Assembly (NCBI RefSeq): GCF_030144855.1
Contig: NC_082707.1
Location: forward strand, 36,394,001 to 36,458,000
Source: Hypanus sabinus
Lineage: Eukaryota
Length of the DNA stretch: 64,000 nt
Reading direction: 5' to 3'
The translations under genes and the position numbers were made by a program. Below, one piece after another: positions 397 through 24,278 of the stretch; within the stretch, counting starts at the first letter, position 1; every line of letters starts with the position of its first letter. The notes below the pieces were generated by a model. The model searched no databases. It worked only from the letters and a program-made list of their open reading frames with translations, and was not told the origin of the DNA.

Positions 397-464
397 TCAA
401 CCTGTGTTGTCTCCTTTAGGGAACAAGATACCTGTGGTTGCTGTTTTTCAACACCCTTCATGGC

Positions 465-1832: not shown

Positions 1833-1910
1833 TGTTTTAAAGATTATTACTTAGTAACTGTTAACAGTACGGGGAACCAATAAATTTTCACATTTTAGCA
1901 AAACATTTTT

Positions 1911-2180
1911 AGCGTAGTGGTTAGCATAACTAACTCTTTACAGTACAAGTGATCTGGGTTCATCTCCCATTGCTCTCTGTAGGGAGTTTGTACATACTCC
2001 CCATGACCGCACGTGTTCCGGTTTCCTCCCTCATTCCAAAAGATGTCCTGATTGGTAGGTGAATTGGTCAATGTAAGTTGTCCTGTGATTCGGCAAGGGT
2101 TAAATCGGGGGGTTGCTGGGTGGCGTGGCTCGAACGGCTAGCGCAGCCTGTTCTGCATTTTATCTCAATACATAAATAAA
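1911..2180 (+). mobile_element. V-SINE (tRNA-derived SINE)
   Basis: tRNA-like head GCGTAGTGGTTAG..GGGTTCATCTCC, V-domain CCGGTTTCCTCCCTCATTCCAAAAGATGT, AATAAATAAA tail. Confidence 0.8.
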
Positions 2181-3160
2181 TCTAAAAAGTCTGCATCTCA
2201 TGTACTTAAAGCCTACATACAGCAATAAAATAATGCCACACGAGTGAATCTGCAGATGCTGGAAATAAATAAAAACACAAAATGCTGGCAGAACTGGCAT
2301 ACAAAACCAAATGGCAGGTTTAGTTTGACCCAATTTTGATGGCTTCCTTTTTAGAAGAAGCATTTTGTAATTATGCAGAGAGTTTCACATCTCCCCTCTC
2401 ATGGACATGCATGTGTAAAAATGTCAGGTTTCCAAATTGATTTAGTAAATACGTTTTGATGCTCACACTTTAAAATCTGATCACACTCATCTGTGTCATA
2501 AAAATTAAATGATGGAAACAATCTACAGTTCAAGAACAATTGTGGAAAGAGAAAGAGAGCTCACTTATCAAACTGAAGACCCTTAATCATGTCAGCTCTC
2601 TTGCTGCCTTGCTTACCATCAACCACTCAAGTGAAAAATCCGCAAAATAACTGGAGTTAAATGTATTCCATGTATAAAACAACAGTGCTGTTAAAGCTTT
2701 GCAATCTATAATTGAGGTCAAGTGAACTAAAAGCTGTGCTGAATCCAACATCTCTCTCAATCTACATTAAGAAAGTTGGATCTCACATGTAGGCAACCTT
2801 GACTCAATAATCTATAATATAAATAACTCAACAACTTGGCAATAAGTTGCCAAAATTGCTCAAAAGCCTCAGGGATAGCTAATGAAAAGGTAATGAAATC
2901 TAATTAAGAAGGGACTACTTTGCTGTGGTTCACATTATAGTTCATTATTGGGGTTATGTTAAAATAACAACTTTTTACAATGATTAGTTTGGTTTCTAAT
3001 TTATCATTGTTAGCCGCTAAACAACAGTGTTTAGAACAGTTTTGTGTTGCCTAGAGTAAACATTCATTAATAAATATTCATTAATCACTGTTACTTTAGT
3101 CCGTTATTGAAGCAACCATGGATATGCAGATACTTTAACTGATTCTCCCTGATTAGGTCA

Positions 3161-3240
3161 TGCGGTTGTGAACTTTCCTTTTACTTGGCTTTACCGTGTT
3201 CCTGATCAGTTTACTTGGTTTACTAGTGTTCCTGATCACC
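3161..3240 (+). promoter_or_regulatory. Candidate proximal promoter motif cluster (RUNX, NFAT/ETS) including a 2x30-bp tandem repeat
   Basis: TGCGGTT 3161-3167, TTTCC 3174-3178, TTCCTG 3199-3204 and 3229-3234 within the tandem 3181-3240, just upstream of candidate ATG 3277. Short motifs, could be chance. Confidence 0.3.
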
Positions 3241-3276
3241 TTTGCTTATTCAATTCTGCCTAATAAGCATTCTGTG

Positions 3277-3303
3277 ATGGCACCAATTCAATTAACCTCA
3301 CAA
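3277..3303 (+). CDS. PDCD1: Candidate first coding exon (MAPIQLTSQ)
   Basis: gtgATGG Kozak (G at -3 and +4); phase-0 donor CAA|GTGGGC; unspliced read-through stops at TAG 3361-3363. Confidence 0.35.
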
Positions 3304-6300
3304 GTGGGCAACTTGGTCGGCACAGATGAGTTGAGCCAAAGGGTCTTTGTCCTTGCTGTATAGTTCTATGACTTTCTGAGCCTGTTCGAGTCTCCCCTCT
3401 CTATAGCTGCGTGCTGTGATTATTTTATTTCTGCAGAGGAATGTGGCTTCACTATTCCTGGTAACTGGTGCTGCGCACATATGCTTGTTGTGCTCAATGA
3501 ACAGTGTTAGAAATTTTAAGTCAAAGAATGTTATCTCAACAGCCATCTATTTTTCTTCTTATTTAGTTTCCTGCGGGGCCACAAAAGCTTATACCAGGTA
3601 GTTAAGATTTTCTGTGCACTGAATATGTCAGTCTTTTTTCCTAATCAATACTCATACCAACTAATCTTTAAATTAAATTTCAACATGTTAACGATACATA
3701 TATAAATGTTTACACAAGCTATACTGTCAATGAAGGATTGATGAAGACCTAATAGTTGCACAACTTGTTCTTAAAGGGTGTAATATTATTTTGAAGTTTG
3801 TATATCCGTACTGGACATTTTGCTGGTAAATCCCAAACACATGCTACTTCACTAACTTAGAACTAGTGTGTGTGTAAAATACTTAATATCACTGTTTTAA
3901 TATAATTTTATCAAACTGGAGCAGCAACAACTTGAAAACAGAAATGCACAGCACTTCAAGTTGTCCACTTTTTATTTGTAATATGCTGGCAGCTACTGGC
4001 AAAACAAACTTGCAGCAGAACACTAGAAGTAAATGGGTGCCACCACTAAAAGCTAGCAGCAATCCCTCCACTGTGGAAATGGCAGTCAATGTCTTTGGTC
4101 ACTTAATAATAGTAATATAAAGTATTAAAAGAAAATCATTAGCTTAATATTGCACCACTTGACTATTCAAAATTTATTGCCCAAGTTCAATCTTTAATCA
4201 ATACACTGTATTTTATTAACATTAAAGGATACTTTTACAGAAATTATATTTCAATCAGCCTCGCATATTTGAGGAACATTTCTCATCTATAGCTAGCTAA
4301 AGCATACTACATCCAGTGCTAATTTTGTAATCCAAATCCATTTTAGAAATAAGTGGAAATTAAGGATAATTGAAATCCATTTGTAAAAACAAAAACATGA
4401 GAAATAAAAACATAAAATATTGGAAATATGTAGCAGGTCAGGCAGCATCAGTGGCAAGAGAAACTGAGTTAGATTTTCAGTCAATGATGTATTAGGAAAA
4501 ACGGGGCTTCTTATTGCTTGTGGCTTTTATTCTCCACCTGACTCCTACTTACACCTTTCTAACTGCGACCTCCTGCATTGTTATATTGTAGTCCAATGCA
4601 ATTTTGAAGAACAAAATTTCATCTTGCATCGGAGCACTTTGCAGCCATAATATTAACTTGATTTATGTACTTGCACTAGCATCATCAATTGCATTTTTGC
4701 ATTGAGTTGTTTGCATTCTGCCATCATATCACAATTTGTTCCTGTTCTCTTCAGCTGCCGTCATTAATCTATTAAATGCATGACTGCATCTATAACCTAT
4801 CTCCATGGCAACCCTTCTCTCACTCTTTTAGAGTTGTCTTCATCTTTACCCTATCTATCTATTTCCCACCCTATCTACAACTTCAAGTGAACTTGTTTCC
4901 TCATCTGATGAAGACTTTAGCTTGAAATTTAACTCAGGTTGCCTTTCCATACACGCTGCCCGGATTGCTGGGTATTACAGAATTTTCTGCCTTCAAATCA
5001 GATTTTCAGTATCTGCAGTTTATTTCCATACAGCTGTGCATATTTTGCACAGAACTTTCACTTTATTCAAAGAATGGATTTGCATTATAGAAAAATGTAA
5101 TACCATAATATAACCATTTAATCTGGCCATCAGAAATTATAAATTATCCTGCCTTATTAGTCAGTGAGCGGAGGATTATTCCCAGTTATCATTCACATTA
5201 CTTTTGATTTATTTTGATTATCAATTGATTCTTTGAATAAATTTAACAGGGCTGATAATTGACCACATTAATAGAAAAACTATGAACTTCCTAAACTCAC
5301 TATGTGAATAACTCTGTTGCTTTTATTTGTAGGTAAACCCTTTATTCTGTCACAGTACCCGAAGACCATTGAGAAGAACACAGGGGAATCAGCTACTATC
5401 TTCTGTAAACTTTCCAATGAAACAATCACTGAAGATATGAGTCTGGTATGGTACAAGCACATGCGTAAGGACAAAAGCAAACTTGGAGAAATCAATCTGA
5501 AGACAAAAAACTTTACAGCAATTGACCATATTCAGTTGATATGGGACCATGGCAACCACACAGCAAAAATGTCAGTACAGCAGCTGAAGGTGAATGACTC
5601 CGGAATTTATGGTTGTGAGCTATTTGCCATTGGTCACAATGTCGTTATCGAGAAAGCCAGTGCAACAAACATCACTGTTGCCTTTGCTGGTATGTCTGCT
5701 CATTCTTCAAATATCTAAGTAATTGCTTGATAAATCTTTGCATAGAGAGTCATGGAGAAGTACAGGTCAGAAACAGGCCTTTTGGCCCATTTAGTCCATG
5801 CCAAAACCATTTAAACAGCCTAATGCCATTGACCTGCATCGAGACCATAGCCCTCCAAGCTAACCACTCCGAGAAGATAGAAAAATTGTCAATGATATAT
5901 TTTATGGTTTAAATTCCACTGAATTTAATGCATCTGTGCTTCACAGCTTATCTTGCAGTTCATAGAGTAAGATCCTGTAGATGGTTAACTCAATACTCAT
6001 AGATACTGTATCATAGATAGAGTAGCAGAACAGAGAACTCGAGGTACTCAAAGGCTTTATGAACAACCCCACTAGCGATCAGGAGTACCTTCAAATTTTG
6101 CCACGGCCATATAGTGAGTTTTATACCTAGATATAGCGTCCAAGTTAAATCATAAGAGTTTTAATTTTGTTTTTCAATCCCTTTGTCAAACACTCCTCAT
6201 ATAATTTATTGCACGTTTCTTTCATTAATTGCTAAATTACACTTAATCATTCACTACTCAACCTTTCATGAATGTTGCTGAGGTTAGGGAAGTTTATATG

Positions 6301-9300
6301 AAATAATGCAATATTATAAAAAGTGTCTTAAAATTCATTTGATATTCTTCAAACTCTTCTCGATTTAGGGCAAGTTATCATCATTGTTTAAGATTTCGAG
6401 GTTTACTGTTATTACCAGCTCTCAGTAACGCACATTAAAGCATTTTGAATAATATTTTGAGTGAGGCATATAAAGAACGAGATTCTGGGGTGGGAATTAT
6501 AGCTTGTATCAATTCAAAAAGTTTAGTTTTCTTGAAGAACATGTGCTACAATATGGATTGTCGATGGCTATTTAATGCTTTCTATAAAACAAATTATAAT
6601 ATTCATTCTAGGTTGCTTTCATTTCTGAGAACAAATTACTCATTTTACAAAAATAATTTTAAAAATAAGACGATAAGACAGGAGCAGAGTGAGGCCATTT
6701 GGCCCATCAAGTCTGCTCCTCCTTATCGGATCAGTTTTTCCGATGTAACCAGGAAACTGGTACTTTTTTACATTCTACATGGTCTTGTTCTAAAATTCAA
6801 CCTTTTTGGACAAATTTAAGACTTTTACTGGAACAAATTACAGGAACACAATTTCCTCATAATCCAATATTACTCTTATTAGGTGATATTGAAGGGATAA
6901 AACCGAAACTCAAACTAAATAAATACCAGAAAGAATTTATAAAAATTGCACTGGCAGAAGCCAAAAAAGCTATTGCAGTTACTTGGAAATTGGATACATA
7001 TTTAAGTATAGACTCTTGGAAGAAAGAAATCTATGGTTGTATTCCATTAGAAAAAATTACTTATAATTTAAGAGATAAATATGAAACATTTCTGAAAATT
7101 TGGAGCCCTTATTTACAAAAGACAGGATTAAATCTATAGATGCTCTGAAGATGAAACAATTGGTTATTTGGGGAAAGAAATAAATATACATATTAAGGTT
7201 ATTACAAATTCCATGGAGCATGTGGAGATCTTCCAACAACCAGGCAATCTTTCTTTCTTTTTTTTTCTCTTTCTCTTTTTTTCCTATAGGGCAGTTAGGG
7301 GGGAGGGTTAAGGGGAGGGGGGAAGGGTTATATACATTTTTTTTTCATACTCCATTTTGTAACTACTTAAAAATGCAATAAAAAAAGTTTTCAAAAAACA
7401 AACAAAAAAAAGTCTGCTCCTCCATTCCATCATGGCGGATTTATTATCCCTCTCAACCCCATTCTCCTGCCTTCTCTCCGTAACCTTCAACACCCTAAAT
7501 AATCAGGAACCTATCAACCTCCACTTTAAGTATACTCAGTGACTTATTCTCCACAGCCGTTTGTGGCAATGAATTCCACATATTCACTACCCTCTGTCTA
7601 AAGCAATGCCTTCTCATCGCTGTTCTAAATGGATGTCCCTCTATTCTGAGGCTGTGCGCTCTAGTCCTAGACTCGCTCACTATAGGAAACATCCTCTCCA
7701 CATCCACTCTATCTGGGGCTTTCAATATTCGATAGGTTTCAATGAGATTCCCCCTGTTTCTACTACACTCCAGTGAGGACAGGCCCAGAATCATCAAACA
7801 CTCCTCATACGTTAACCCTTTCATTCCCAGAATTATTCTTGTGAACTTCCTCTAGACCCACTCCAAATACACTGGTTTCAGCCACTCATCTGCCTTCATC
7901 CTCTGAGTTTATTGACATGGAGGTGAGCTTTTATACTTCCTGAGATTAGCTGGTGGTAAACCTATCTCCTGAACAAAGAGGAAGTTATATTACATAGACA
8001 ATTAAAAGTGCTTGTAAGGTCGTATCTTTTGATGACAATATACTACCTTCATTTGCTTAAGGATGACTTTTTAATAACAATTAAACACAGAATGAATTGC
8101 TTCTACTGTGGTCCTTTTGACAGAAAGACAATAGTAATTTGTCTAAAATGTGTTTCTAGCAGAACTAATGTAAACATTTGAAACAAAGTCCAATACCCAT
8201 TATATTATGTACATAAACATGCTGCATCCTTAGTAGTAACACCGCAATCCTGGATTTGATCTGTATTCCTAAAGGAAAAGTAAACATTTATATGAACATA
8301 ATATAAAGCATTTGAAAAGAACAGAGTGACTATCCCAGTCCAGAGTCTAGTCAGAAATTATATTGCTTCCATTCTTATCAGAGCGATGTCATGTAAATGA
8401 CATGACCTTTCGTATTTTATGGCTCACTAAACAGCCAGATATTTATTCATTAAGGTTTCAATTAATACATTTAACATGCTTTATTGACATTAATCCATAC
8501 ACAATGGAAAGAACAATTGTTTACTAGTTCCAAAATATTTAATCAACAAGAAATCAATAATCTTGTACTTAGATGCAAATCAGGCAAATAAGAAGCAGGC
8601 AGGAAAACTTTAAATAAACCTTACTAACTGAAGGTATTACTCATCATTATTAAATATTAGATTTCTATAAATCTGAAAATGGAGATGGTGAGTCATGTCA
8701 GTGTACTATATCTTTCATAGACTTGTAAACAACCTCCAGAATCATTTTCTCACAATGAATATTCCATTCGTTCGTTCACATACAGTATGTGGGTTAGGTA
8801 CAAAAATGGTCAATGAGCTAATGTTGCATTAAACCTTGTTAAGGAAAGAGTAGTTTCCGTGGTTTTTTCAAACCACACACTGCAAAGAGTGACAGGTAAA
8901 GGAGTTTTCCAGTGTACTGTACATTACACTCAGTGGCCACTTTATTAGATAACTCCTGTACCTGATAAAGTGGCTGCTGAGTGAATGTTCAATCTTCTGC
9001 TGCTGTTGCCCATCCACTTCAAAGTTCAACGTGTGATGTATTCAGGGTTGCCCTTCTGTACTCCACTGTTGTAATGCATGGTTACTTGAGTTACTGTCAC
9101 TTGAACCAGTCTGGCCTCTCTCATCAACAAGGCATCATCACCCACATAACTGCTGCTCACTGGATGCTTGATTTTGTTTTTCACACCATTCTCCATAAAC
9201 TGTAGAGACTATGGTGCGTGAAAATCCCAGGGGATCGGCAATTTCTGAGATACTCGAGCCAAGGCGTCTGGCACCAGCAATAATTCCGCAGTCAAACTCA

Positions 9301-9497
9301 CTTAGATCACATTTCTTCCTCATTCTGATGTTTGAACAGAGCCTCTCAATCATGTCTCCATGCTCTCCGTGCTTAGAGTTGCTGCCGCATGATTAGCTGA
9401 TTAGATATTTGTATTAACAAGCAGGGGCACAGGTATATCTAATAAAGAGGCCAGTGTGTGTATTTTTAACTAAATATAATACCTATTAGTTGAAAAT

Positions 9498-9534
<37 letters not shown>

Positions 9535-12500
9535 CATTGACACAATGGATCTGGATGATGTAGGAAAATTTAAGTAACACACACAAAAGGCTGGATAATT
9601 ATATAATTATTTTATATGTTATGGCTCAGTATAAAAATAAAATACACCGAGATTGTCAATGTAAATAATATTAGCTTTAATAAAAATGCCAGATAATCAC
9701 AAGAACTAGACTGAGCAAACTAATCACAGAGCCTGTTTTACTCAAGTACTAGATTTCAGGACACTCGCGCAAATTTCCAGGAAAAGTTCAATTGTAGAGG
9801 AAGTTTAGACTTTCCAGTTAGAGGCATAGAGTCACAGAACCCTCAGCCTGGAAACAGTTCTGACCTATCTAGTCAGTGCTGAACCATTAATCTGCCTAGT
9901 CCCATTGATATGCCCTTGTCCCAGAGCCCTCCCCACCCCTCTCATCCATGCACCTATCCAAATTTCTCTTAAATGTTGAAATGAACCACACATCTACCAC
10001 TTGCACTGGCAGCTCACTCACCACCCTCTGAGTGATGAAGTTACCTCTCATGTTCCCCTTAAATGTTTCACCTTTCACCCTTAATCCATGCTCTCTAGTT
10101 GTAGTCTCACCAACCTCAATGGAAAAAGCCTGCTAGATAGGGAGAAACCCTATCTACACCCTTCATAATTCTGTATACGTCTATCAAATATCCCCTCAAT
10201 CTTCTACATTCTAGGGAATAAAGTCCTAGCCTTTTCAACCCTTCCCTATAACTCAGGTCCGCAAGTCTCGGTAAAGCCTTGTAAATTTTCTCTGTACTCT
10301 TTCAATCTTATTTACATCTTTTCTGTAGTTAGTTGACCAAGACTGCACAAAATACTCCAAATTGGGTCTCACCAACATCTCCTACAATTTCAACATGTCA
10401 GGTTCACCGGCCTATACTCTCACGGTTTATTCTTTCTTGAACAACAGAACAACTTCAGCTACCCTCCAGTCCTCCGGCACCTTACCTGCAGCTGAGGATG
10501 TTTTAAATATCTCTGCTAGGGTCCTTGCAATTTCCGTACCAGTCTCCCATGGGGTCCAAGGGAACAGCTGGTCAGGCCCTGGGGATTTATCCACACTAAT
10601 TTGCCTCCTCCTCTGTAATCTGAATAGGGTCCATGACTTTGATGCTTCTTTTCCTCACATCTATAGACTCTGTGTCCAACTCCCGAGTAAATACAGATTA
10701 AAAAAAACAATTTAATATTTCCCCATCTCTTTCAGCTCCATGCAGGGATTATGATGCTGATCTTCCAGAGGACTAATTTTGTTCCTTGCTAACCTTTTGA
10801 TCTAAATATATATATAGTTCTCTTGCATTTCTTATACTCCTCAAGCACCTCATTTGTTCCTACCTGCCCATACTTCCTATGCACCTCCTCCTTTTTTTCC
10901 AAGCAGGGCCTCAATATCTCTCAAAAAGCCAAGGCTCCATAAATCCATTATCCTTGTTGTTTATTCTGATTGGAACATACCAACTCTGTACTCCCAAATT
11001 TACACTTTCAGAGGGCTTCACACTTACCAAATACTACACGGCTTTGCCAAACAACAACCTAACCCAAACCACACTTGCCAGATCCTTTCTGATTCCATCA
11101 AAATTGACTTTTCTCCAGCTCACAAACTCAACTCGAGAGCCGGGCCTATCCTTTTCCATAATTACCTTGAAACTAATGGCAATATGATCACAAGCTAAAA
11201 AGTTCATCTTGTCCAAAAGATTGCAGCGGCCCTGCAGAAAGTTATGTCACCTGCCCTGTCTCATTTCCTAATAGGAGATTTAGCATCACACACCCTCTAG
11301 TTGGGACATTTATGTACTGATTAAAGAAGCTTTTCTGAACACATTTGACAAATTCTTTCCAATCAAGCCTTTTTACAGTATGGGAGTTCCAGTCAATATG
11401 TGGAAAGTTAAAATCACCTATTACCACAACCGTATATTTCTTGAAACAGACTGCATTCTCTCTACAAATTTACTCTTCTAAATCCCGTGGATGATCAATA
11501 ATATAATCCCGTGGATGATCAATAATATAATCCCGTAAATGCATTTATACCTTTTTCATTTCTCAGTTCTATCCATTAAGCCTTACTGGATGAATTGTGC
11601 TGTCTGAGCACTGCCGTGACATTTTAACTGACCAGTAATGTCACCCTTCCACCTTTAATGCCTCCTGCTCTATTACAACCAAAACAATGGAACCACGGAA
11701 GACTGAGCTGCTGGTCCTGCAAGCGAGTCTCACTAATGGCCGATCCATGCCCTAAGCACTTCCGTCTTTCCTACAACACTCCTTGCTCTGAAAAAAAATG
11801 CAGCTCAGAACATGAGTCACACCATGCTCAACGTTTTGATTCCTGACCTTCTACGTAGGCTTAAAAACATCTTTCTCCACAACCGCTCCACTATCTGTTC
11901 TGGCAATGCAGCATTAGCAAACCTTCTCGCTAGGAAAGTCTTCAAATTTTTACAACTTTAGAACTTTACTAAAATCTTCTTGTTTAATGAGTATCTCTAC
12001 TGTGTAACAGGAAGCAATAGAAAAAAAAGCTCGGTATAATTTGAATTGATATTGTTGTAGACTATAGCCTACACGTAAATGCAAACTGTCACACATTTTC
12101 TTCAAAATTTGCAGTCTTTGCATTGCAGGAATATGATTATAATCTAACAGACAGAGGCAGGTGTTTCATCTCACTGAACTCACACTAACAATCAAGCAGC
12201 CATGGGTTTGACAAGAATAGCATCTGTTGATGTTTTGACTCACGACTCTGCATCAGGACAGACTAAAGGAAAGATAGCCAATATATGGAAGCACATGAGT
12301 GAGGTGAGGCAGAGGATGGAAGGTGATGATGAGGTGTGTAGGATGGGGAGATGAAGTCAGGAGAAGAGAGATGAAGGGGGAACAACTAGACAGATGCTGG
12401 TGGGAGATAGGTGCAACCAGAGATAGGGGTGAAGAAGACGAATTAGAAAATAAAAGAGGGATGAAGGGCAATTGAAATCAAGTGGGGGAGGTGATAAGAA

Positions 12501-15500
12501 ATGTAAGACAAAGGAGAAGAAATCCCACTGCATAGAAGGTGGGCTGAAGGAACCCGATGGTGTTAGAAGGGGTGCAGGTATTGAGCAAGATGGGGAGAAG
12601 GAAGAGAAAGATGAACAGAGGGAAAGATCCTGAGAGGACTGTGGCAAAGGATGGGTTACCTGAAGCTGGAACTTTGCTGGCTGTATGATTGGGTTTGTTG
12701 GATTAGGGTTTAGAATCATTATTTTTCTTTTATTTGTAATTTAACTTTACTCTGTTTGCTTCCTACTTCTATATAATCACCTATATTCATGGAATTGTTC
12801 AGTAATTGTTCTAGTATTTGTAGTATCTGATCTGTATTTTCTAGAAGCTTCACAGCTTTTCTGCAGCAGCTGTCATGCCTCTTGAATCTTAGGTTACATC
12901 TCATCAATAGAATGCACTTTTATCTTTAGTCTCAGTACGGGCTGATCACAACTTACTTTTCTTTGCTTGCTCTTTGTTCTTGTAATACTTAATAAAATAG
13001 CATTTCTGTTTGGCCTCACAATGCCAGTGAACGCAGCCAAGGAGAGACAAGCTGTCGTGGGAGTAGGAAGGGGAATTAAAGTGACGTGTGACCAGAACTA
13101 GAAGCTCAACATAGCCACTGCGCACAGGGCACAGGTTCATCCCAAAGTTGCTGTGTCTCTGTAGAGGAAGCACAACACTTATCCCTTCATCTTCCCTCTC
13201 ACCACCATACAGGGACATTAGCAGCTCCTCCAGGTGACTTCTCCAACCTATTGAATGCATTCAGGCCTTGCAATGTGGCCTGTGAAGGATGTAAGAAATA
13301 AAGTCAATTCAATTCAAATGATGACATATGAAGAAAAATCACCCAGTAGATGAGAGACTCCGAAGATCTACTGTCCGCAGTAAAGGAGAGGAAACTGGCG
13401 TGGTATGGCCCTGTAACAAGATCAAGTGGACAGCGCAGGGATAAAGAAAAAGGGGCAGATGGAGGAAGAAATGAGCAGAAAATATTGCAGAGTGGACTAC
13501 AGAGAACCTTGGGCAGCCCAAGCACTCGCCCACAACCATGAGGATTGGAGGCAACTGGTGCCGCGGTCAGTCGTACTCACCCCTATGACCCAGGCGGGTT
13601 GCGGGATTCATAACCGTTACCATAATTCAATTATTTACATAGGCTCCTGCAAAAAATTGAGGGTAAATAGTGTAGGTCAGAATTCATGTGAATGCTTTAA
13701 CATTTGTAGTGCAACTTTAGTAGGAAGAATTAAACAGCAATATGTTGGACATGCTGGCACAGAGAATGCAATTATCAATCAAAATGTTCTTTAAATGTAT
13801 GCCTGTTAATGAGACAAAAAGTTCTTCAAAAGCATTAATCTGGAATTTATTTTTATATTGGTCTTTCTTCATTATTTTACCCATATTTCTCCCTAACCAG
13901 ATCGGACCTGATTTGCTGCTAACTGTCCATATACATTGCTTAAAACAAACCACTGAATATGATCTTTCAATTCGATTTCATCTCTCAGTTCTATCAATCC
14001 CTTTCTTTCTGACAGAGAGCATCACAATTCTTGCTCACAATACTGCTGGAAGTTATGGCAAAAGTACTTCTATTTACTGTTAACTAGATATTCAATCCTG
14101 ATCTTACAAATAATGGCACAATTTCAATTCCAGGTAAATAAGTGTTAGTATCAGGTCAAAATATAAGAAGGTAACTGGGAATTAATTCTGAATGAAATTT
14201 ATTAGATGAATTTAATTCAATATATTAAATATTATTAATTGAGTGTGGCTATCAAATGAAATGAGAAATTACTCCTTTTTTTTGTAGGACAGACAACTAC
14301 TCCAGAACCAAGGAACAACACGAACAGCACAAGTATTGTGGCAGATTCCACAAGCATGGAAACCAATATTAACATAATACTTGCAGCAGTAGTAGCTACT
14401 TTTGTCATCATCTGCTTATTAATTTTTATTTTTATCAGATACCGACCAAAAAAACAAGGTGAGTTGCTTATCATTTTTTCTTCTATTGATCTAATTCAAC
14501 ATCTTAAGGAAATAATCTGCTCATTGCCTGAATATGTCTGTTCTGATTTTACCTGACTGGAATATTCAAAGCTCCAGCTTCCCAATCACACACATCTTGC
14601 CTAGTTTGTATCATCTGCATGAGTGATTTCCTGCAGCCAGTGTGTACTTGTGGAGAAGGAGATTAGAATACAAATTACTTTTCCCACAATATTTGGTCAT
14701 TTATCATTTTCCAGGTTTCCTGCAGTTTTTTGTCCTGATGCAAATGGACACAGCCCCCATTAAATGTAATCACACTTCTATATTCCACCCATCCATCCAG
14801 AATCCTCTTTGACTTTCTACCATCAGGCAGGAGACTATGATGCATGAAAACAAGAATGGTCAGGAGGAGTAACAATTTCTTCCCCAGGCCATTAGGTTTC
14901 CAAACTGTCAGTTGCATTGCATTCGAAGTGTCACTGGTTAATCTGTTCCGTAATTTACAACATATGTTAATAACACACTTTAATTTTATTTATGTGTGAT
15001 TCATCTGTAGATTTTATCCTTACCTTTATAACTTATCGTGTGTTATGTGCTTTAAACCCTGGTTCAAAGAAATGTTGTCTTATTACTTTACTTCACCCCT
15101 CCCCCTCTCCTGGTTTCATCTATCACCTACCACTTACCACCTACCACCTCGCACTTCTTCCTCCCTTCCACCCACCTTCTTGCTTTAACTTTTCATCTTT
15201 TTTCCAGTCCTGATGAAGGGTCTAAGCCTGAAACAAAGACTGTCTACTCTTTTCCATAGGTGCTGCCTGGCCTGCTGAGTTCCTCCAGCATTTTGTGTGC
15301 GTTGCTCACATTTCATAGCACCTTGTTTGTATCATTCATTTGGCATCATTTCATTAAGAATTAAATAAACTACCAGTGATATTACTATATAAGACCAAAG
15401 AAAATATAGCAGAATTAGGCCATCTCAACCGAGTCGGCTGATCCAATATTCCCCTCAGCCCCAATCTCCTGCCTTCTCCTCGTATCCCTTCATGCCCTAA

Positions 15501-18500
15501 ACAATATGTTGTAGAAAAGCTTATTTAAAGAGCACAAACAGGGTCTGAATGATCACTTGGCTACCTTTATTATTCAACCTTTAGTTATAGATCATACAAA
15601 GCAAAAGACTTGCTGAGAATTGATTTTAAAAGCTCCTTCTTGAACATTTTGCATTACTGGGGTGAGGTCCACAAATTAAACACATTTGACTGGAACCTCT
15701 CACAGATAAAAGTGGCAAATAAAATCCAGCCTCATTATTTTTCACTGCTGATGGGCCAACCATGCCAAACTTAACATAACCTAGTAATTAAAGTAAAAAC
15801 ATTAAGAAAGCTCATACCTTGAGGGAAGAAGATGGCCCCTTCCTTGCAAGAAGGATGAAAATTAGGAGCCAGTAGAATGAGCTATTTCTGCAATCAAAAT
15901 GAGATTGGCACAGGCCTTGGTTAAATCCTCCTCCTCATCAAGGTGGATGGTAGTAAAAAAAAAGAATTAAGATCCTAAAATGTACAACAATGCCTCTAAA
16001 GATAAACTGTCACAAAACAAGTTGAATTTATAATGTCCTCAGGATCAAATTATCTCCATCCAGACAGATTAAAATGCAATGAAGAAAGTTTCAATGTGAC
16101 GGAAGGAAGAAGTCATTAAAAGGCCCAGATGCTCTTCCATTGGTCGCCATTATTCATGCATGGCATGTGGTCACTGCTGGCAAAGTCAGTGCTTATTGCT
16201 CAATATTGCTCACCTGCCATGAACATCTACCAATATAACAAATGCCTTGCTGAGACACTTCCGACAGCAATCAGCCGTGCTAGTTTGGGACTGGACTTAC
16301 ATTTAGAAGAGACCAGGTGGAGAAGGTGGGCTTTTTACCCAAAATGACATCAATGAATTTATTGGCTTTGTGACAGTTTTATTGTAACTTTCTAACATCA
16401 GCTTTATGGATTGCTAATATAAATAAATAATTGTAAATAAAAATACCGAATTTCAATAAAAGCATGTTTTAATGAATTGCATCCTCACCCAGTCGAATCT
16501 GTATGTTATTGAGATCCACAGCAATGCAGCTGAATCTTAATGCCTCTCGTAAATAGTCTAAGAAGCCAGACAGCTTAACTGGTAAAAAGGGATGGGCAGT
16601 AAATGCTGGATTAGGTTTCCCACTTTGAATGAACTAATAAATAATTGCCAGTCACTAGAACAATTCCTCTTATTGAGTCCTGAACTAAAGCAGCAAACTT
16701 CCATTGAAAGAAAAATTTAGTCTGACAAAAATATAAAGACAGACAAAGAAGTTAATTCATTGTTTACAGAGTTTGAAATAAGCATCACTGTTTATGCGTC
16801 TCTGTCTTTCGTAAGTGTAAACACACAAAATATATAGACAATTTAAGTAGCACCTGAGATCGAAATCATGCACCTAATATAAATTTAATGTCTCTGCCAA
16901 TGATTTTTAGAGTTATTATATTCTGAATGCCTTGAGCAATGATTAGAAAGTAGAAAATCATTACTGGAATGCGAGATTAGCTATACCAAAGACCAAGAAA
17001 ATAATTGAGATCCTCATGAAATTCAAAATCTATTTGTGATTTGGTTCCACTTCAGCTGTTTCATTCTGTTTTAAAAATGTTATTATACCCCACGTTATTC
17101 TAACAGAGCATGAGAAATGACCTCAGCAGTGCCCAATCATTTCTTTAATCAGCTTTTTCTCTGAAGCTTTGCAAATAACTTATTCAAACTTAATTAGAGT
17201 CCAATGCCTGATCAGCAACGTGGTGTACAAAACCACCCTCGTCAAATATAGGAATAAGGTATTGGTGTTAAAAGTGATCATTTACTAAATTTACAGAAAT
17301 TGAATGGGATAAAAGTTGTTTTACATGTATTGAGGGCTTTATTTTCACAGGAGGTTTCTACAAATGTTCCAGCACTAGCTCCAGGTAGCACGGTGGATCA
17401 GACTTGGTGGGCCAAAAGGCCTAATTTTGCCCCTATATCTTATGGTCTTATGGTAATGGTTAGTCCTGCAAGTTTTATTATACTCTATACTGGACTTTTG
17501 AAGCAATATTTTGCAATTTTCTTTCCCTTGATAGATCCAGAAACCAGTCCCCCTACAGTGGATGCCAATTGTCAGGTAAATATATTTCACCCAGTTACTG
17601 TACAATATCAAAGGGTATCATGAGAAAAATAGTAAAGAGAGAGATAGACAACGAGGAGGAGAGGCAAGAAAGGAAAAGAGATGGCAATACACAGATGGTT
17701 ATTAAAGTGTCTCTTTGTAATACTAGGTTGGAATACCATGGAAACAGGTAGACAGTCAAACTGTTCCCCATTGTGCCCACACCCTGCAATAACCCAAGCA
17801 GTAGTATAAATATGCATTTATTGGTTGGACAAGACAGATGCATAAATTTAAGACTTGTATATGTGTACATATTTATGTAAGTGGAAGCCTTTGTCACTTT
17901 CAGTTGTGTTTCAGTGGTAAAATTATCACCCCTAAGTCAAGTCCTGTCCAGCAACCTGAACACCAACCCTATGTTGGTACTCCAATCCAGAGCTGAAGGA
18001 ACGTTGTATTGAGGTGTTGTCCCTCTAATAACATCCTGCCATGTAAAATATCCAAGGGCTTAACTTGATGAATAGCAGTGGAGTCGCCACCAGCATATTG
18101 GAATGTTCTTTCCATTAAATATCTGGGCATGATCACATGATCCTTGTGTGAAAATTGGCAGCCAATTTTCTTGCATTTCGTTCTTTTATCTTATATCTAT
18201 GGCTAAATGTGCCTGATGAGGCAAATTTAAATTGCTGAAGTAAAAAGTTAACTGAAAAACTGATGTGGCTCCATTGAGACCTATTTTAATCAAACACGAG
18301 GAAATCTGCAGATGCTGGAAATTCAGGCAACGCACACAAAATGCTGGTGGAACACAACAGGCCAGGCAGCATCTATAGGAAGAAGCAATGTTTTGTGCCG
18401 AGACCCTTCATCAGGACTAACTGGAATAAAAGATAGTAAGAGATTCTGAGGGTCTTGGCCCAAAACGTCGACATTGCTTCTTCCTATAGATGCTGCCTGG

Positions 18501-21500
18501 CCTGCTGCGTTCCACCAGTATTTTGTGTGCGTTGTTCCTATTTTAATCAGTTTGTTTCCAGTTTACAGATAATAAAGGGAATCAAAGTCATGGTGACTGA
18601 CATGATTGATAGACAGATACTTCATTGATCCCAAAGGAAATTAATGTCACAGTAGCATTATGAGTGCACAGACAGACAAATATAAGAAGGAAAGTAAGAA
18701 AAAATAAAAAATAAGTTACCTCAAACAGAATAACAGGAAGGGGTCATCAATTCCCTGGCTATAGGTTGACTCATTAAAGAGCCTAATAGTCAACGATAAG
18801 AATTACCTCATATAGCGCTCTTTGGAACAGCACAGTTGTCTTAGTCTGTGACTAAAAGTGCTCCTCCCTTCAGCCAAGGGGGCATGCAGAGGGTGAGGAA
18901 CATTGTCCAGAATTGCCAGGGTTTTCCATAGGGTCCTTTGTTCTATCACAGCCTCCTATGTGTCCAGTTTGACTCCTGTAACAGAGCCAGCCTTTCTAAT
19001 CAGTTTATTGAGCCTGTTGGCATCACCCGTGTTGATGCCTTTGCCCCAGCACACCATCACATAGTGCGCTTGGGGCAGATCTCAAGTGGACAGACAGACA
19101 CAGTCCCCAGGCAGGAATAGTCTAGCTGGGCACAGCCAGTAGTTAGCCTGGTAGCAGTAGGCACCGTTGGCAGCTTGGATGGCCCTCTGTGGCATCTTCC
19201 AAGCATTCCTGCAGTGGCAAACCATGGTTCTGGCGGGACCTCCACCATGGGAACAACAGGGGTTTTAGCCATGAAGCACTTCAAAGGGTAGAGGAGGTGT
19301 GTAGGTCACTGGCCAGCTCAACCCAGAGCAATTACTTCTTCCATGTGGATGGATTAGAGGCAGCGAAATATCGCAGAAACCTGTCCACTTGCTGCCCTTC
19401 CTGACTGACTGTTGATCTGTGGATGATAGCCATGTGGAGTTTAGGGTGGGCAATGAAGTGGACCACCTTGGAGAACATCCACCACTGTCATGACCACAGT
19501 GGCCCTATCAGAAGGTAGCAAACCCATAATGAAATCCATTGGCAAAGTGGGACCATGGGTGTCGGGGCCCAGATATGCTGGTTGGAGGAGTTATCTGGAC
19601 ATATTAAGGGCAGGCAGTGATGAATTGACATACTTCTGCAATCATGGTGGGCATTGCAGAAAATCCAGAGTTGGTCGTGTGTCTGAATAGCCAGAGAGGA
19701 TTGAGGAGTGGGCCCACGGGAGTACCTCAGAGCACATACATGCGGTTAACAGTTGTATCCAGAAAGGCTCATGACGTAGCGCCTGGCATATCTGGTTCCC
19801 AAGGTCCCAGATGATCAGGGCGAGTATCTGAAAAGATAGGATAATGGCCTGAGGGTCAATCTCCACTTCTGCTGGGTCGAACTGTTGTGACAAGGTGTCT
19901 GCCTAAGTGTTCTTGGAACTGGGTCAGTAAATGGTAAAGTTGAATTGCTCAAAGAAGCCGGACATGGGTTGAGTTGGCCTATCAGTTGTATGGATTTGAG
20001 GGTTTGGTGGTCAGTACAGATCAGGAAGGGTTCAGTGTTTCCAACCAGTCAACGTCTTCATTCATCAAGTTCCATTTAATGGCTATAGCTCCATGTCTTC
20101 TACCCCATAACAGCGCTGTGTGAAGTTGAACTTGTGTGAGGAGAAGGCACAAGGGTGTGTTTTCCCATCCAGTCCTCACTGGGAGAGGATGGCACATCAC
20201 ATGCATCCACCTCTACCCAAAAGGTCGGATAGTGGAGAATGGGAGTGGGAGTGAAGTGTCCCTTGAGCAGGTTATCCCTGAGGGAGGTGACTTGGTGTAG
20301 GAGGTTAAAAGACTGGTGACTTGGCTATGGTTTCTGTCAGAGAAGCTCAAAGAATGATGTAGCTGTTTAAGGGATCGCAGTTGGGGCCATCCAACAACAT
20401 TGCATGCTCTCCCTGGGTCCATGGTTATGCCTTGCTGTAAAAGGATGTAACCCTGAGTCAATCACTGGTTCACCCATCCTGTCAGGAAATGTAGAGCATG
20501 TTTGGCCCAAGAGCAGAATTAGCGGAGACGACTTAGCAGTGAGCGATAATTTTAATAGCAAACTGCAAAATTAGGTTAACGGAAATTAATCCAGGATTGA
20601 ATGACTTGCCACATGAAGAGCATTTGATGGCTCTGGGCCTGTATTCACTAGGATTCTGAACCACATTGGAACCTATTGAATGGTGAAAGCCCCAGACAGA
20701 GTGGATGTGGAGAGGATGTTTCCTATGGTGGGAGAGAACACAACCTTAGAAGAGAGTGGCATCCTTTTAGAACAGAGGTGAGAAGGAACTTCTTTAGCCA
20801 AAGAGTGGTGAATCTGTGGATTTCTTTGCCACAGGCAGCTATGGAGGCCAGGTCTTTATGTACATTTAAAGGCAGAGGTTGATAGACTGGTCAGGACTTG
20901 AAGAGATATGGGGAAATGGCAGGAGACTGAAAATCTTGTCCTTTTTCAAGATATATGCCATTTTCATTTGAAATATTTTCCCATTCCTTCTTCATCTAAG
21001 TCCTGGAATTCCCCATCCAACAGCATTAGGGGACAATCTTCACCAAAATAACTGCAGCAGTTCTAGAAGGGACTTCACCATAATCTTCACATGGGCAATA
21101 AATGCTGACATTGTTAGATCTTGAAAAGTCATTTTATTTTTATTAGAAGGACCTTACTGTTCTCCATCATCTGTGACGTTAAGTAATTTAAATATTCTAG
21201 CAAGTAGTTGGAGGAAGTCACAGATGGCAAAACCACTTCAACTAGTATTTTAATTTTTGCTAATCTGATAAGACTGTAGCTTGTTTCTCAGAACAGAACT
21301 GTCAGAGAAGAGCAGTTGGCAATGTTGCTACAGATACCTCTTTCCTCAAACTTCACTAACTCTCAGTGTGGCCTACAGTGATGTGCTTATTTCCTAAATT
21401 AATAAATCCATTTATTATTATCATATGTACTGAGCTACAGTAAAAACTTGCATAGCAGTCAAACAGATTATTTCATTATAATAGTGAAGTGAGATAGCAC

Positions 21501-24278
21501 AAGGTAAAAAAAAAATCGAAGTTCTAAATAAATGTTTTGGTCCTGAGAAAACGCAGGGAAGGTAGACAATAAGGTGTAAGGTCATAATGAGGTAAATTGT
21601 GAGGAGAAGATTCCATCTTACCATATTAAGGAAACACTTGGTAGCCTTATAACAGCTGAACAAAAATTGTCCTTGAGCCTGATGGTATGCCTTTACTGGC
21701 TTTTGTATCTTCTGGGAGGGAGAAGGGAGAATATTGAGGGTGCATGGTGTCTGATTACACTGACTGCTCTCTAAAGGAAGCAGGAAATGCAGAGAGAGTC
21801 CGTAGAGGGAAAGCCAGTTTCCATGATCTGCTGAGCTACGTGTATAACTCTCTGCAGTTCCTCGTGGTTACATGCCGAGCTGTTGCCAAGCCAAGCTGTG
21901 ATGTATCCAGGAAGGATGCTTTCTATGTTGCTTTGATAGAATTGGTGTGTGTCAAAGAGTACATACAAATTTCTTTAGCTTCTGGAGCATGCAGAGATGC
22001 TGGTGAGCTTATATCAATGTGGTGGCCCAGGACAGGCTGATTGTGATGTTTACTCCTCAACCCTCTCAACTCAGCATCACTGATGTAAACAACAGCATGT
22101 ACGACCAATCCTTCTCCCCTGTTCCCAGAAGTCATTGATCAGCTCTTTTGTTTTTCCGACATTGAGGGAACGATTGTTGTCATGACAGAGTGTCTCTATG
22201 TCCCTCCTTCCCTCTGACTAATCGTCATTTGGCATATGGCCCACTGCAGGGACGTCACTTGCAGATGGAGTTAGAGCAGGGTCAGGCCATGCAGCCATGA
22301 GTGTATGGGACAGAGTGGACAGCTGACGATGCAGCTTTGTGTTGCCGTTAATCATGGCGGAGGTGTTCAGAATCATTTATAACTTCACCGGCATATGTTG
22401 CGTTGTCTTTACATAATAATAAAAAGGAGTGGTGAGTTATAGTAAGTATAGATACTGTATATTAAATGGTTAAAATAAATAAGTAGTGCAAAAATAGAAA
22501 TAAAGAGTAACAAGGCAGTGTTCACAGGTTCATTGTCCATTCAGAAATCAGATGGCTGAATGGAAGAAGCTGCCCCTGAATCGTTGACTTTGTGCCTTCA
22601 GGCTTCTCTACCTCCTTTCTGATGGTATTAATGGGAACAAGGGATGACCTGGGTGATGGGGATCCTTAATGATGAAGCCACCTTTTTGAGGCATCACTCT
22701 TTGAAGATGTGGAGGCTAGTGCCCATGATTGAGCTGACCAATTTTAGAACTCTCTGCAGCTTATTTCAATCCTGCGCAGTAGCCCCCCCCCCCCCCCCAC
22801 TCCATACCAGACAGTGCTAATGCTTATTGATTGTGGTCTGTTAGTCAGGAAACCAAGGATCCATTTATAAAGTGATGTGTTGAGTTCCAGGTCTAGGAGT
22901 TTGGAGATCAATTTGCTTGGAATTGTAATATTGAAGGCTGAGCTGCATCCCTCTGCTTTACCTCATACTGCATAATGTCCATTGTTGCACTGGTGAATGC
23001 AGAGACCCTCCAGATTCCTTCAAACGCAGTAATTACAAAGCCTTTCTCTATAAGTTTTAGCAAATCTTCTTAATCAGACCAATTCCCTTTTTCCTCCAAT
23101 AAGCCTGCACCCTGTCAGTAATGTTCATTATATCTGGAGCCCAGTCCAGGAAATGTCATGTACACAGATCCAGAGCAGGGTCAGATCATATTTCTACTTG
23201 TGCCTTTATCCAAACATAAAGTCTCATCATAAAGGGAGAAAGGCAGTAGAAATATTTAACGGGCAAAGCAACACTTGTGATGAAGAAAAAACACAGGTAA
23301 TAGTTTGACTCAATGATAATTCATCAGTTCCGACTGACGTGCTGAATGTCCGTAGTTTTCAGATTTCAGGAGTATGCTGCATTTTCCTTTTGGATAAAAT
23401 TTGGCCATGTCTATTCAAAGTCATATTTTTCAGAGTGTAATTGCAGCTGGAAAGGTTGTCATTTATTGCTTATCCATAGCTGTTCTTTAGGAGTGGTGGT
23501 CAGTCCTCTTCTTGAACCATCAATTCTTCTGGTTAAAGTAAGAGTTGAGGAAGTCCCAGGAAGTGTTATAGCTCTCCTACCAGCCCAGGTTGTTACCAAT
23601 TGTACTCCAGACTTGTACAGATCTAAGTGATGTGTGAAGATCACTCAGGATTTGACAATGATGCATTCTGGAATCAGGTTATTGATAAGATGTTAGTTTA
23701 GTTCTATGTGTTGTTAAAAAGCATTTTTCAGTAATGAAGAAGCAGCAATAGAATTGCAACCCAAACTGTTGAAAAGACAGAATGTTCTGGAGTGCAAACA
23801 CAAGCATTTTCAGAAGGTGGATGGTCATTTGAGAAGCTGGTGCATATCACAAGTACTGGCTGTGACCACTGATACCAGGCAGAAAAACTCTGAAGAGTAT
23901 TGGTAATGGCTGGGGTCACCCATCTTGTAAAGACACTGCCCAGAAGAAGGCAATGGCAATCACTTTGGTAGAAAAATTTGCCAAGAACAATCGTGGTCAT
24001 GGAAAGACCATAATAGCCCATGTCATACGGCATGGCACATGATGAACGAACGAACATGTGCAAACAGTTTAACAGGAATGCGCAGACTAAAGATCATTCT
24101 TACTTATATTCAATTTCTTTTGATTGTATTTCAGAAACCGAATGATCAAATTTCCACCGTGTTCTCTGTCGACTACGCTGTACTCCAGGTCCCCGAGAAA
24201 AATATTCGTCAGAACCTAACAACATCTGTTGCTTCCGATGATTCATACTATGCTACAATTATCTTTGCTCCTCAATAG
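3277..24278 (+). CDS. PDCD1: PD-1 (programmed cell death 1)-like receptor gene, spliced; 4 core exons plus 5 candidate exons
   Basis: IgV - stalk - TM - short exon - ITIM/ITSM exon architecture, all GT-AG, open frame throughout. Full model 3277-3303, 3407-3460, 3567-3597, 5333-5689, 7882-7922, 14088-14133, 14288-14458, 16770-16810, 24135-24278 = 912 nt. The 5' start is tentative. Confidence 0.85.
3407..3460 (+). CDS. PDCD1: Candidate signal-peptide exon ([18 protein letters not shown])
   Basis: Acceptor TCTCCCCTCTCTATAG, donor CTG|GTAACT, hydrophobic core; LQ..FL pattern resembles the end of human PD-1 exon 1 (VLQLGWRPGWFL). Confidence 0.45.
3567..3597 (+). CDS. PDCD1: Candidate 31-nt linker exon ([10 protein letters not shown])
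   Basis: Acceptor TTTTTCTTCTTATTTAG, donor CAG|GTAGTT; phase 0 to 1 links the signal exon to the phase-1 IgV exon. Confidence 0.4.
4405..5000. mobile_element. Old, degenerate Penelope-like fold-back remnant
   Basis: Diverged inverted termini (~4405-4490, ~4905-5000 with CTGATGAAG..TTGAAA) around an eroded PLE C-terminal remnant. Confidence 0.45.
5333..5689 (+). CDS. PDCD1: IgV domain exon of PD-1-like receptor
   Basis: Acceptor TTTTATTTGTAG, donor CTG|GTATGT, phase 1-1. B-strand Cys (IFC), [11 protein letters not shown]; Cys spacing 70 versus 69 in human PD-1; MSV..NDSG.Y.C as in PD-1; no MYPPPY; sequons NET, NFT, NHT, NDS, NIT. Confidence 0.93.
6665..7872 (-). mobile_element. CR1 LINE 3' end, interrupted by an L1
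   Basis: ORF 7495-7824 ([39 protein letters not shown]); tail near 6665. Confidence 0.9.
6723..7409 (+). mobile_element. 5'-truncated L1 LINE with 14-bp TSD
   Basis: L1 ORF2 C-terminus ([31 protein letters not shown]), G-rich UTR, A-tail; TSD AAGTCTGCTCCTCC at 6709-6722 and 7410-7423. Confidence 0.9.
7882..7922 (+). CDS. PDCD1: Candidate stalk mini-exon A ([14 protein letters not shown])
   Basis: TTTCAG acceptor (weak tract), strong donor GAG|GTGAGC, 41 nt phase 1 to 0, open; complements mini-exon B. Confidence 0.45.
8927..9460 (-). mobile_element. Tc1-type DNA transposon, internally deleted
   Basis: TIRs CACTCAGTGGCCACTTTATTAG and inverse, TA on both flanks; minus ORF 9138-9353 is a Tc1 N-terminal HTH ([27 protein letters not shown]). 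Confidence 0.9.
9504..9532. repeat. (TA)n microsatellite
   Basis: Direct reading. Confidence 0.95.
9820..11830 (-). mobile_element. CR1 LINE, internally deleted (ORF1 remnant, endonuclease, RT C-terminus, 3' tail)
   Basis: [27 protein letters not shown] (APE) and [13 protein letters not shown] (C-terminus). Confidence 0.85.
12230..12700 (-). mobile_element. Degenerate Penelope-like 3' end (purine-rich on +)
   Basis: Purine-rich low-complexity tract like those at 50600-50820 and 57540-57800. Confidence 0.45.
13330..13610 (+). mobile_element. RTE LINE 3' fragment
   Basis: [18 protein letters not shown] and HEDWRQLV, typical of the RTE C-terminus. Confidence 0.75.
14088..14133 (+). CDS. PDCD1: Candidate stalk mini-exon B ([15 protein letters not shown])
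   Basis: Acceptor TATTTACTGTTAACTAG, donor CAG|GTAAAT, 46 nt phase 0 to 1, NGT sequon; usable only together with mini-exon A. Confidence 0.45.
14288..14458 (+). CDS. PDCD1: Stalk and transmembrane exon
   Basis: Acceptor CCTTTTTTTTGTAG, donor AAG|GTGAGT, 171 nt phase 1-1; [44 protein letters not shown]. Confidence 0.92.
15040..15305 (+). mobile_element. Penelope-like 3' terminus
   Basis: Pyrimidine tract, then CAGTC-CTGATGA-AGGGTCTAAGCCT-GAAAC-AAA-GACTG (cleavage triplet mutated) and the standard tail. Confidence 0.75.
16770..16810 (+). CDS. PDCD1: Short cytoplasmic exon ([14 protein letters not shown])
   Basis: TGTTTACAG acceptor, TTC|GTAAGT donor; 41 nt phase 1 to 0, exactly the shift needed between the TM and last exons (human exon 4 is 35 nt with the same phases). 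Confidence 0.75.
17930..18180 (+). mobile_element. Ancient DeuSINE-like remnant
   Basis: GTAAAATATCCAAGGGC..GAATAGCAGTGGAGT and ATCTGGGCATGATCACAT..AAATTGGCAGCC resemble the Deu-domain consensus (from memory). Confidence 0.5.
18292..18536. mobile_element. Penelope-like fold-back insertion with 12-bp TSD
   Basis: ~85-bp near-perfect inverted arms; TSD CCTATTTTAATC at 18280-18291 and 18537-18548. Confidence 0.88.
18575..19062 (-). mobile_element. Rex1/Babar-type LINE 3' end
   Basis: Tail GACAGATACTTCATTGATCCC and C-terminal remnant; same subfamily as 51770-52135. Confidence 0.6.
19065..20570 (-). mobile_element. Degenerate Ty3/Gypsy (Sushi/Tf2-like) pol fragment: RT thumb, RNase H, integrase
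   Basis: [19 protein letters not shown]; EVDA..HPCAF..TDH; [21 protein letters not shown]; GYHPQINSQ; many frameshifts. Confidence 0.75.
20585..20930 (+). mobile_element. CR1 3' fragment
   Basis: [30 protein letters not shown]; same subfamily as 29315-29770. Confidence 0.85.
21430..22820 (-). mobile_element. Two adjacent Rex1/Babar-type 3' fragments
   Basis: [28 protein letters not shown] (DUF1891-like); second tail begins ~22370. Confidence 0.7.
23790..24055 (+). mobile_element. RTE-tailed SINE/LINE 3' fragment (second copy)
   Basis: Matches 150-396; (GAAC)n tail ends ~80 bp before the last PD-1 exon. Confidence 0.6.
24135..24278 (+). CDS. PDCD1: Last coding exon with ITIM and ITSM-like motifs
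   Basis: Acceptor TTGTATTTCAG; [36 protein letters not shown]; matches human VFSVDYGEL and TEYATIVF, with the same Y-to-Y spacing of 25. Confidence 0.93.
   Translation, partial: KPNDQISTVFSVDYAVLQVPEKNIRQNLTTSVASDDSYYATIIFAPQ

Follow-up and report, generated by a model that had tools for sequence, protein, structure and literature searches.

Introduction

PD-1 is counted among nine members of the CD28 family (Quiniou et al. 2024, PMC11599192). Human PD-1 carries VFSVDYGEL and EYATIVF in its tail, whose tyrosines, Tyr 223 and Tyr 248, lie 25 residues apart, and P39, Y68, K78 and the N116 sequon were named as PD-1-typical residues, with Y68 and K78 being the hydrogen-bond donors to PD-L1 (Kondo et al. 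2025, PMC12151841). PD-1 with the same motifs has already been published for cartilaginous fishes in both of these studies, which used synteny to place the cartilaginous-fish clade as PD-1; in that clade the residue following the phosphotyrosine (position pY+1) of the ITIM (immunoreceptor tyrosine-based inhibitory motif) is Ala, and there is no Thr at pY-2 of the second motif (PMC12151841; PMC11599192). In this study, we analysed a stretch of 64,000 nucleotides of Hypanus sabinus, the Atlantic stingray (contig NC_082707.1, positions 36,394,001 to 36,458,000), which is referred to as the window and which very probably contains, judging by its sequence, the coding exons 2-5 of the PDCD1 gene for PD-1, with exon 1 lying outside it. 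The original prediction, made from the letters of the window, had proposed a PD-1 orthologue in a probable ray and had stated that fish and shark homologues were reported only recently, which agrees with the years of the two studies, 2024 and 2025. Neither of them covers Hypanus, and no paper pairing H. sabinus with PD-1 was found in the library searched. The finding is the correct naming of an unnamed orthologue in a known family, and its novelty is low.

Gene structure and orthology

The coding exons that were found in the window are listed below, with a slash marking the splice boundary.

5333-5689, + strand: exon 2, IgV domain; 357 bp; phase 1 in, 1 out; acceptor tttgtag/GT, donor CTG/gtatgt
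14288-14458, + strand: exon 3, stalk, transmembrane (TM) helix and RYRPKKQ stop-transfer; 171 bp; phase 1 in, 1 out; acceptor ttttgtag/GA, donor AAG/gtgagt
17535-17575, + strand: exon 4, short cytoplasmic exon; 41 bp; phase 1 in, 0 out; 100% tblastn match to the NCBI protein
24135-24278, + strand: exon 5, tail; acceptor atttcag/AAA; stop codon TAG at 24276-24278

Spliced in silico, the four exons encode 236 residues without a stop and form an exact substring of a 263-aa NCBI protein of H. sabinus, which is named 'uncharacterized protein LOC132404574' and whose residue numbering is used throughout. This identity with an independent model, together with the orthologues in 16 other cartilaginous fishes that are described below, places the gene far beyond chance. 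The IgV, TM and tail exons had been claimed to splice into a PD-1-like protein from positions 9-10 kb apart in a ray genome; joined with 17535-17575 they do so, the measured intervals are 8.6 and 9.7 kb, and the protein is identical to that of the stingray. The intron phases from exons 2-5, (1)-1-1-0, also agree with the predicted 1-1-1-0, the short phase-1-to-0 exon being the one at 17535-17575. The product is predicted to be a type I membrane protein with a leader, a single IgV domain, a stalk that is glycosylated and free of cysteine, a TM helix and a 67-residue tail. The leader, i.e., the first 27 residues of the LOC132404574 protein, had no tblastn match in the window, which is free of any N. 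Since the NCBI model spans 28,530 bp from start to stop, its ATG lies approximately 4.25 kb upstream of the first base of the window. A scan of positions 1-5332 for hydrophobic phase-1 exons of the ATG...GT type returned only one weak leader candidate, at 3944, which is unrelated to the known leader and was rejected.

A search with the IgV exon against 1.84 billion representative proteins gave three strong matches (basking shark, epaulette shark and elephant fish), below which the scores fell to unrelated multi-Ig proteins. When the search was seeded with the basking-shark protein and then continued with the family profile, one gene was found in each of 17 cartilaginous fishes, so that the orthologues in the 16 species other than the stingray range from a chimaera to rays. 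The only informative names among them were those of Amblyraja radiata, whose two isoforms (X1 and X2) are called 'programmed cell death protein 1'. The skate XP_032887962 and the catshark XP_038672536, which the supplement of Kondo et al. gives as PD-1, belong to these orthologues, and the stingray protein has 61-63% identity to the former and 49% to the latter. The next closest species was Hemitrygon akajei, with 93-94% identity to the LOC132404574 protein. The maximum-likelihood tree of 16 orthologues reproduced the species tree: the chimaera was placed outside, the shark orders were recovered, and the rays were monophyletic (99/100), with Hypanus and Hemitrygon joined by Mobula and then by Pristis. 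One gene per species and a tree congruent with that of the species form the pattern of a single-copy orthologue, and in these comparisons the stingray gene stands in a 1:1 orthologous relationship to the published PD-1 genes of thorny skate and catshark. The exon layout points the same way. Both the skate (sizes 79/357/162/41/144) and the bamboo shark (34/345/171/41/183) have five exons with the phases 1-1-1-0; the sizes of the stingray exons 2-5, 357/171/41/144, match this layout as well as that of the published cartilaginous-fish PD-1 (five exons, 1-1-1-0, 357/162-171/41/144). The stingray protein further shares with skate and catshark PD-1 the IgV landmarks, the cysteine-free stalk, a near-identical TM segment followed by RYRPKKQ, the SPPT.DA.CQ peptide of exon 4, the Ala at pY+1 of the ITIM and DDSYYATI(I/V)F.

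The ratio of nonsynonymous to synonymous substitution rates (dN/dS) between stingray and skate was 0.32 overall; by region, the IgV domain had 0.35, the stalk and TM part 0.68 and the cytoplasmic part 0.10. Between stingray and bamboo shark, the tail had 0.24 as against 0.39 overall. No part of the protein is more constrained than the tail, which is under strong purifying selection, and this is the expectation if it docks a conserved phosphatase. These values also bear on whether the locus could be a decaying or non-functional copy. The position of the leader exon outside the window and the introns full of transposon debris could be taken as signs of a pseudogene, but the four exons have open frames and canonical splice sites and agree exactly with an NCBI model that is complete at 263 aa, the overall and tail ratios given above are low, and each species has one copy whose tree is congruent with the species tree, which together leave a pseudogene barely any probability.

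The exon at 16770-16810

In a companion to the original prediction, the short exon was placed at 16770-16810 on the + strand, and the peptide TVYASL that is encoded there was read as a third tyrosine motif. Neither was borne out, as this interval is a stingray-specific decoy within intron 3 and not exon 4. Its signals are good (ttgtttacag/AG and TTC/gtaagt), its frame is open, and its 41 bp coincide by chance with the length and the phase of exon 4, all of which would suit its use in the stingray, either constitutively or as a mutually exclusive alternative that would add TVYASL to the tail. Such use is nevertheless very improbable. The NCBI model and every orthologue encode the peptide of 17535-17575 and not that of the decoy. 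In the sawfish Pristis, the decoy donor has changed from GT to AT and the Tyr codon to Asp, and in the skate Amblyraja, there is no AG acceptor and a 7-bp deletion disrupts the frame. Including both exons together would shift the frame. The interval between exons 3 and 5 contains 66 open AG..GTR candidates in the right phase, nine of them with strong donors, so decoys of this sort are expected by chance. The similarity to skate around the decoy was considered as a conserved element and rejected, since it belongs to a collinear intron block with 69% identity over approximately 850 bp, that is, to ordinary intron conservation, and the identity is no greater in the decoy than in its flanks. The Hemitrygon protein had 88% identity to the model that contained the decoy. 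With the rejection of this exon, the third tyrosine motif falls as well. The case teaches that a short exon chosen by eye in a long intron for its compatible phase requires cross-species checks.

For exon 4 at 17535-17575, the AG acceptor, the GT donor and the open frame are all retained in Hypanus, Pristis, Amblyraja and Chiloscyllium. All of the orthologues contain the peptide, with the consensus D-P-x-x-S-P-P-T-x-D-A-x-C-Q. In its core, S-P-P-x-x-D-x-x-C-Q, the Gln is invariant and the Cys occurs in at least 90% of the species from chimaera to rays; the human exon-4 sequence has no evident counterpart of this core.

Relationship to PD-1

That PD-1 is the closest non-antibody protein was supported by four rankings that are independent of database names. 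A profile of 14 species was compared with all of the PDB sequences, among which mouse PD-1 gave the top single-domain score (31.4 bits, E 9e-7). PD-1 entries made up roughly half of the best 60 matches, the remainder being antibody or shark NAR V domains, and none of these 60 was an entry for CD28, CTLA-4, BTLA or TIGIT. The PD-1 chains deposited in the PDB are without the tail, so this ranking rests on the ectodomain; accordingly, the tail exon had no match in the PDB. When the AlphaFold model was compared using Foldseek with 350,542 PDB chains, ranks 1-5 were all mouse PD-1, with a root-mean-square deviation of 1.5-1.8 A and a TM-score of 0.85-0.89 by target. In Swiss-Prot, mouse PD-1 (3e-13) and human PD-1 (1.9e-12) led by a factor of approximately 100, with CD8 beta (1.4e-10) coming next. 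In the language-model features of the ESM Atlas, which serve as a lead only, rank 1 was a 'PDCD1 protein' cluster (0.97, 218/256 features), with BTLA- and CTLA-4-like clusters at ranks 14-15.

The human and mouse PD-1 references were Q15116 and Q02242, with the PDB entries 3BIK, 1NPU and 4ZQK. Besides being the best fold and profile match, PD-1 of these mammals has in common with the stingray protein the single IgV domain, the W-Y pair, the equivalent of K78, the NDSG.Y.C sequon, the stalk rich in Ser and Thr, the motifs VFSVDY..L and YATI.F, whose tyrosines are 25 residues apart, and the layout of leader, IgV, TM, short and tail exons. The stingray protein differs from them in Ala instead of Gly at pY+1 of the ITIM and in Ser at pY-2 and Tyr at pY-1 in place of Thr-Glu at the position of the ITSM (immunoreceptor tyrosine-based switch motif). 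It also has seven N-glycosylation sequons in its ectodomain, and its tail ends eight residues past the second tyrosine, whereas that of human PD-1 continues for approximately 40.

With CD28, CTLA-4 and ICOS, members of the same superfamily, the stingray protein shares a single IgV domain, a TM helix and a short tail bearing tyrosines. Unlike them, it has neither the dimerising Cys in the stalk nor a proline-rich FG loop of the MYPPPY type, and in Swiss-Prot mouse CD28 and pig CTLA-4 reached just ranks 23 and 25 by fold, with E about 1e-9 compared to 3e-13 for PD-1. BTLA is inhibitory and recruits SHP phosphatases through its paired ITIM and ITSM tyrosines. It differs from the stingray protein in the tail sequence around its tyrosines, and it ranked 14 by language-model features and was found neither among the top 30 fold matches nor among the top 60 profile matches.

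Several observations weigh against the assignment to PD-1. The identity of the IgV domain to mammalian PD-1 is only 18-25% (approximately 25% to mouse). Searches of protein databases with the family profile, both at E <= 0.01 and at E <= 10, returned cartilaginous-fish proteins alone and no significant tetrapod PD-1. T145 and E146 of human PD-1 are not retained in the stingray, which has ITVAFAG with V-A-F at the exon 2/3 junction. Neither the window nor, in three relatives, the sequence up to 10 kb from the gene showed any neighbouring gene, the reported linkage markers of PD-1 being muc4, tnk2 and rtp, or SNED1, MTERF4, BOK and others. Finally, the orthology of the chondrichthyan genes was worded cautiously by Quiniou et al. 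(2024, PMC11599192) as 'may possess'. The same authors do report a clustering with tetrapod PD-1 as opposed to other CD28-family members, as 'data not shown'. As to the searches, mouse PD-1 would have been sufficient on score, and tetrapod PD-1 was dropped at the word prefilter; its absence is therefore not evidence against homology. T145 and D/E146 were described by Kondo et al. (2025, PMC12151841) as 'more typical' of PD-1 and not as defining it. Sharks have ITVTE where the stingray has ITVAFAG, and the loss of T145/E146 is, as read from these sequences, a change of the ray lineage at the exon 2/3 junction.

The low identity could also mean that the gene encodes a separate inhibitory receptor with a single IgV domain that belongs to the CD28 superfamily, is special to cartilaginous fishes and owes its PD-1-like tail to convergence towards SHP-2 binding. 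By sequence, the V domains of antibodies and NAR score roughly equal to PD-1, and several extra CD28-family genes exist in cartilaginous fishes (Quiniou et al. 2024, PMC11599192), which would fit such an origin. We regard it as improbable, because the ectodomain and the tail each indicate PD-1, with the tail-less PDB chains still ranking PD-1 first among the receptors, and because the likeness in the tail exceeds a minimal ITIM/ITSM pair, extending to VFSVDY..L, YATI.F and the exact spacing of 25 residues. The exon number and phases are constant across the family, and the two published studies assigned the clade to PD-1 with synteny. The proposal of a PD-1 orthologue is supported by the 1:1 relationship with published skate and catshark PD-1 and by the top position of PD-1 in the four rankings.

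Motifs of the ectodomain and the tail

Exon 2 matched the Pfam V-set family (1e-09), and in the AlphaFold model the predicted local distance difference test score exceeded 90 across most of the IgV domain, with a helix at residues 166-196. C51, W66 and C121 of the IgV core are invariant across the 14-species alignment; within exon 2, which encodes all three, the codons of W66-Y67 lie at 5449-5454 and that of K76 at 5479-5481. NDSGIYGC, with the sequon N114-D-S, is encoded by 5593-5616. Among the PD-1-typical residues, the stingray has P36, Y67, K76 and N114-D-S116, which correspond to P39, Y68, K78 and the N116 sequon of the human protein, and the K and NDSG.Y.C are also in register in the alignment with mouse PD-1. 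The FG loop is without Pro, the stalk is rich in Ser, Thr and Asn and has no Cys, and the TM sequence is almost invariant among cartilaginous fishes.

Regarding exon 3, NCBI isoform X1 of the skate omits the stalk/TM exon in frame, which would give a TM-less and presumably soluble PD-1. The stingray exon 3 (14288-14458), with its 171 bp, would likewise be skipped in frame. Human PD-1 has an isoform in which exon 3 is skipped and which resembles isoform X1 of the skate.

In the tail, the ITIM-type VFSVDYAVL lies at 24159-24185, with its Tyr codon at 24174-24176, and SYYATIIF takes the position of the ITSM, YATIIF being encoded by 24249-24266 and its Tyr by 24249-24251. The two tyrosines are 25 residues apart, and the tail fits the consensus (I/V)(D/E)Y(A/G)(E/V)L plus YATIx(F/Y). 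The columns D229, Y230, A231 and L233, and Y255, A256, T257 and F260, are invariant in the 14 species. Thus, NDSG.Y.C, VFSVDY..L, YATI.F and the tyrosine spacing, which the original prediction had listed as shared with human PD-1, are all present at the places that it gave. The second motif departs from the canonical ITSM, TxYxx(V/I), since the stingray has S-Y-Y-A-T-I with Ser instead of Thr at pY-2. The same departure was published for the PD-1 of 'primitive' vertebrates, so it is compatible with membership in PD-1.

Judged from the homologous mammalian PD-1, the IgV domain would bind the single fish PD-L1 with its front sheet, which carries the equivalents of human Y68 and K78, and the conserved N116-type glycan could bind galectins. 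On engagement beside an antigen receptor, the tyrosines of VDYAVL and SYYATIIF, 25 residues apart, would be phosphorylated, and both phosphotyrosines would together dock SHP-2 (or SHP-2L or SHP-1) by its tandem SH2 domains. This docking would activate the phosphatase and dampen T-cell signalling.

The C-terminal end differs within the cartilaginous fishes. Sharks, the chimaera and the electric ray Narcine extend 13 residues further, with Q/E-Q-A-T-G-V-Q-K-T-T..., and Hypanus and Amblyraja have TAG/TGA followed in frame by QTAGV(Q/E)K (QTAGVQKTT or QTAGVEKIT). The truncation sites lie at 24276-24314 of the window and at 32584-32640 of the skate locus sequence L002. In the stingray, the corresponding feature is as follows.

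24279-24314, + strand: relic of a C-terminal extension of the ancestral protein, with which the 3' untranslated region (UTR) now begins; QTAGVQKTTGHY in frame straight after the stop

The loss of 13 C-terminal residues is, from the comparison of these ends, common to most rays (all but Narcine), and a ray truncation with a readable relic is possibly unreported so far. The stingray shows both of the published peculiarities of the cartilaginous-fish tail, Ala at pY+1 of the ITIM and no Thr at pY-2 of the second motif. In human PD-1, Ala at pY+1 of the ITIM promotes the recruitment of SHP-1. This Ala, the second motif without the Thr that is selective for the C-terminal SH2 domain, and the Cys in SPP...C-Q of exon 4 form the basis of a tentative suggestion, which we consider rather doubtful, that the PD-1 of cartilaginous fishes may signal unlike mammalian PD-1, with a further change in rays. 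On that reading, the loss of the 13 residues would make the stingray protein a natural minimal PD-1 tail, ending eight residues past the second tyrosine.

Other features of the window

The introns of the gene can be aligned with those of skate over long collinear stretches (window 800-17600 against L002 13700-30600) with 65-77% identity. Examples are 16516-17369 with 69% and 8604-8909 with 77%, and the region of the IgV exon has about the same identity, 69%. The conservation of the introns points, as read from this alignment, to neutral change at a very slow pace, and intron similarity is here no mark of function. Downstream of the gene, 26014-26482, which lies 1.7-2.2 kb past the stop, had 66% identity to 33025-33490 of the bamboo-shark locus sequence L001 at the matching downstream position. 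It contains many stops in the single frame that was translated and could belong to the 3' UTR or represent a non-coding element that is conserved. A repeat of approximately 46-180 bp with an internal inverted repeat was observed at 1647-1827 and 15200-15298. It has more than 10 copies in both orientations, occurs in the skate locus too, and is probably an old elasmobranch element that resembles a short interspersed nuclear element (SINE) or a miniature inverted-repeat transposable element (MITE).

Remains of transposons were found at the following positions.

26855-27634, + strand: transposon remains
32000-38000: transposon remains
35087-35863, + strand: transposon remains
41112-41573, - strand: transposon remains

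The matches comprised a reverse-transcriptase open reading frame (ORF) (RVT_1, 1e-20), an integrase ORF (Integrase_H2C2 and rve), which sits in a block of 47-53% GC, and a weak zf-RVT match. No other host genes were recognised in the window, and a scan of its whole length against Rfam gave no match.

Conclusions

The overall picture of PD-1 evolution is unchanged by this locus, as the studies of 2024 and 2025 had already described shark and ray PD-1 with these features. LOC132404574 gains a proper name and a verified exon map, and a myliobatiform ray joins the set of outgroups for the evolution of PD-1. With PD-1 as the very probable identity of the gene, the W-Y pair, the equivalent of K78, the N116 sequon and both tyrosine motifs with their spacing would have been held in PD-1 for more than 400 million years, and the long C-terminal tail and T145/E146 would be dispensable.

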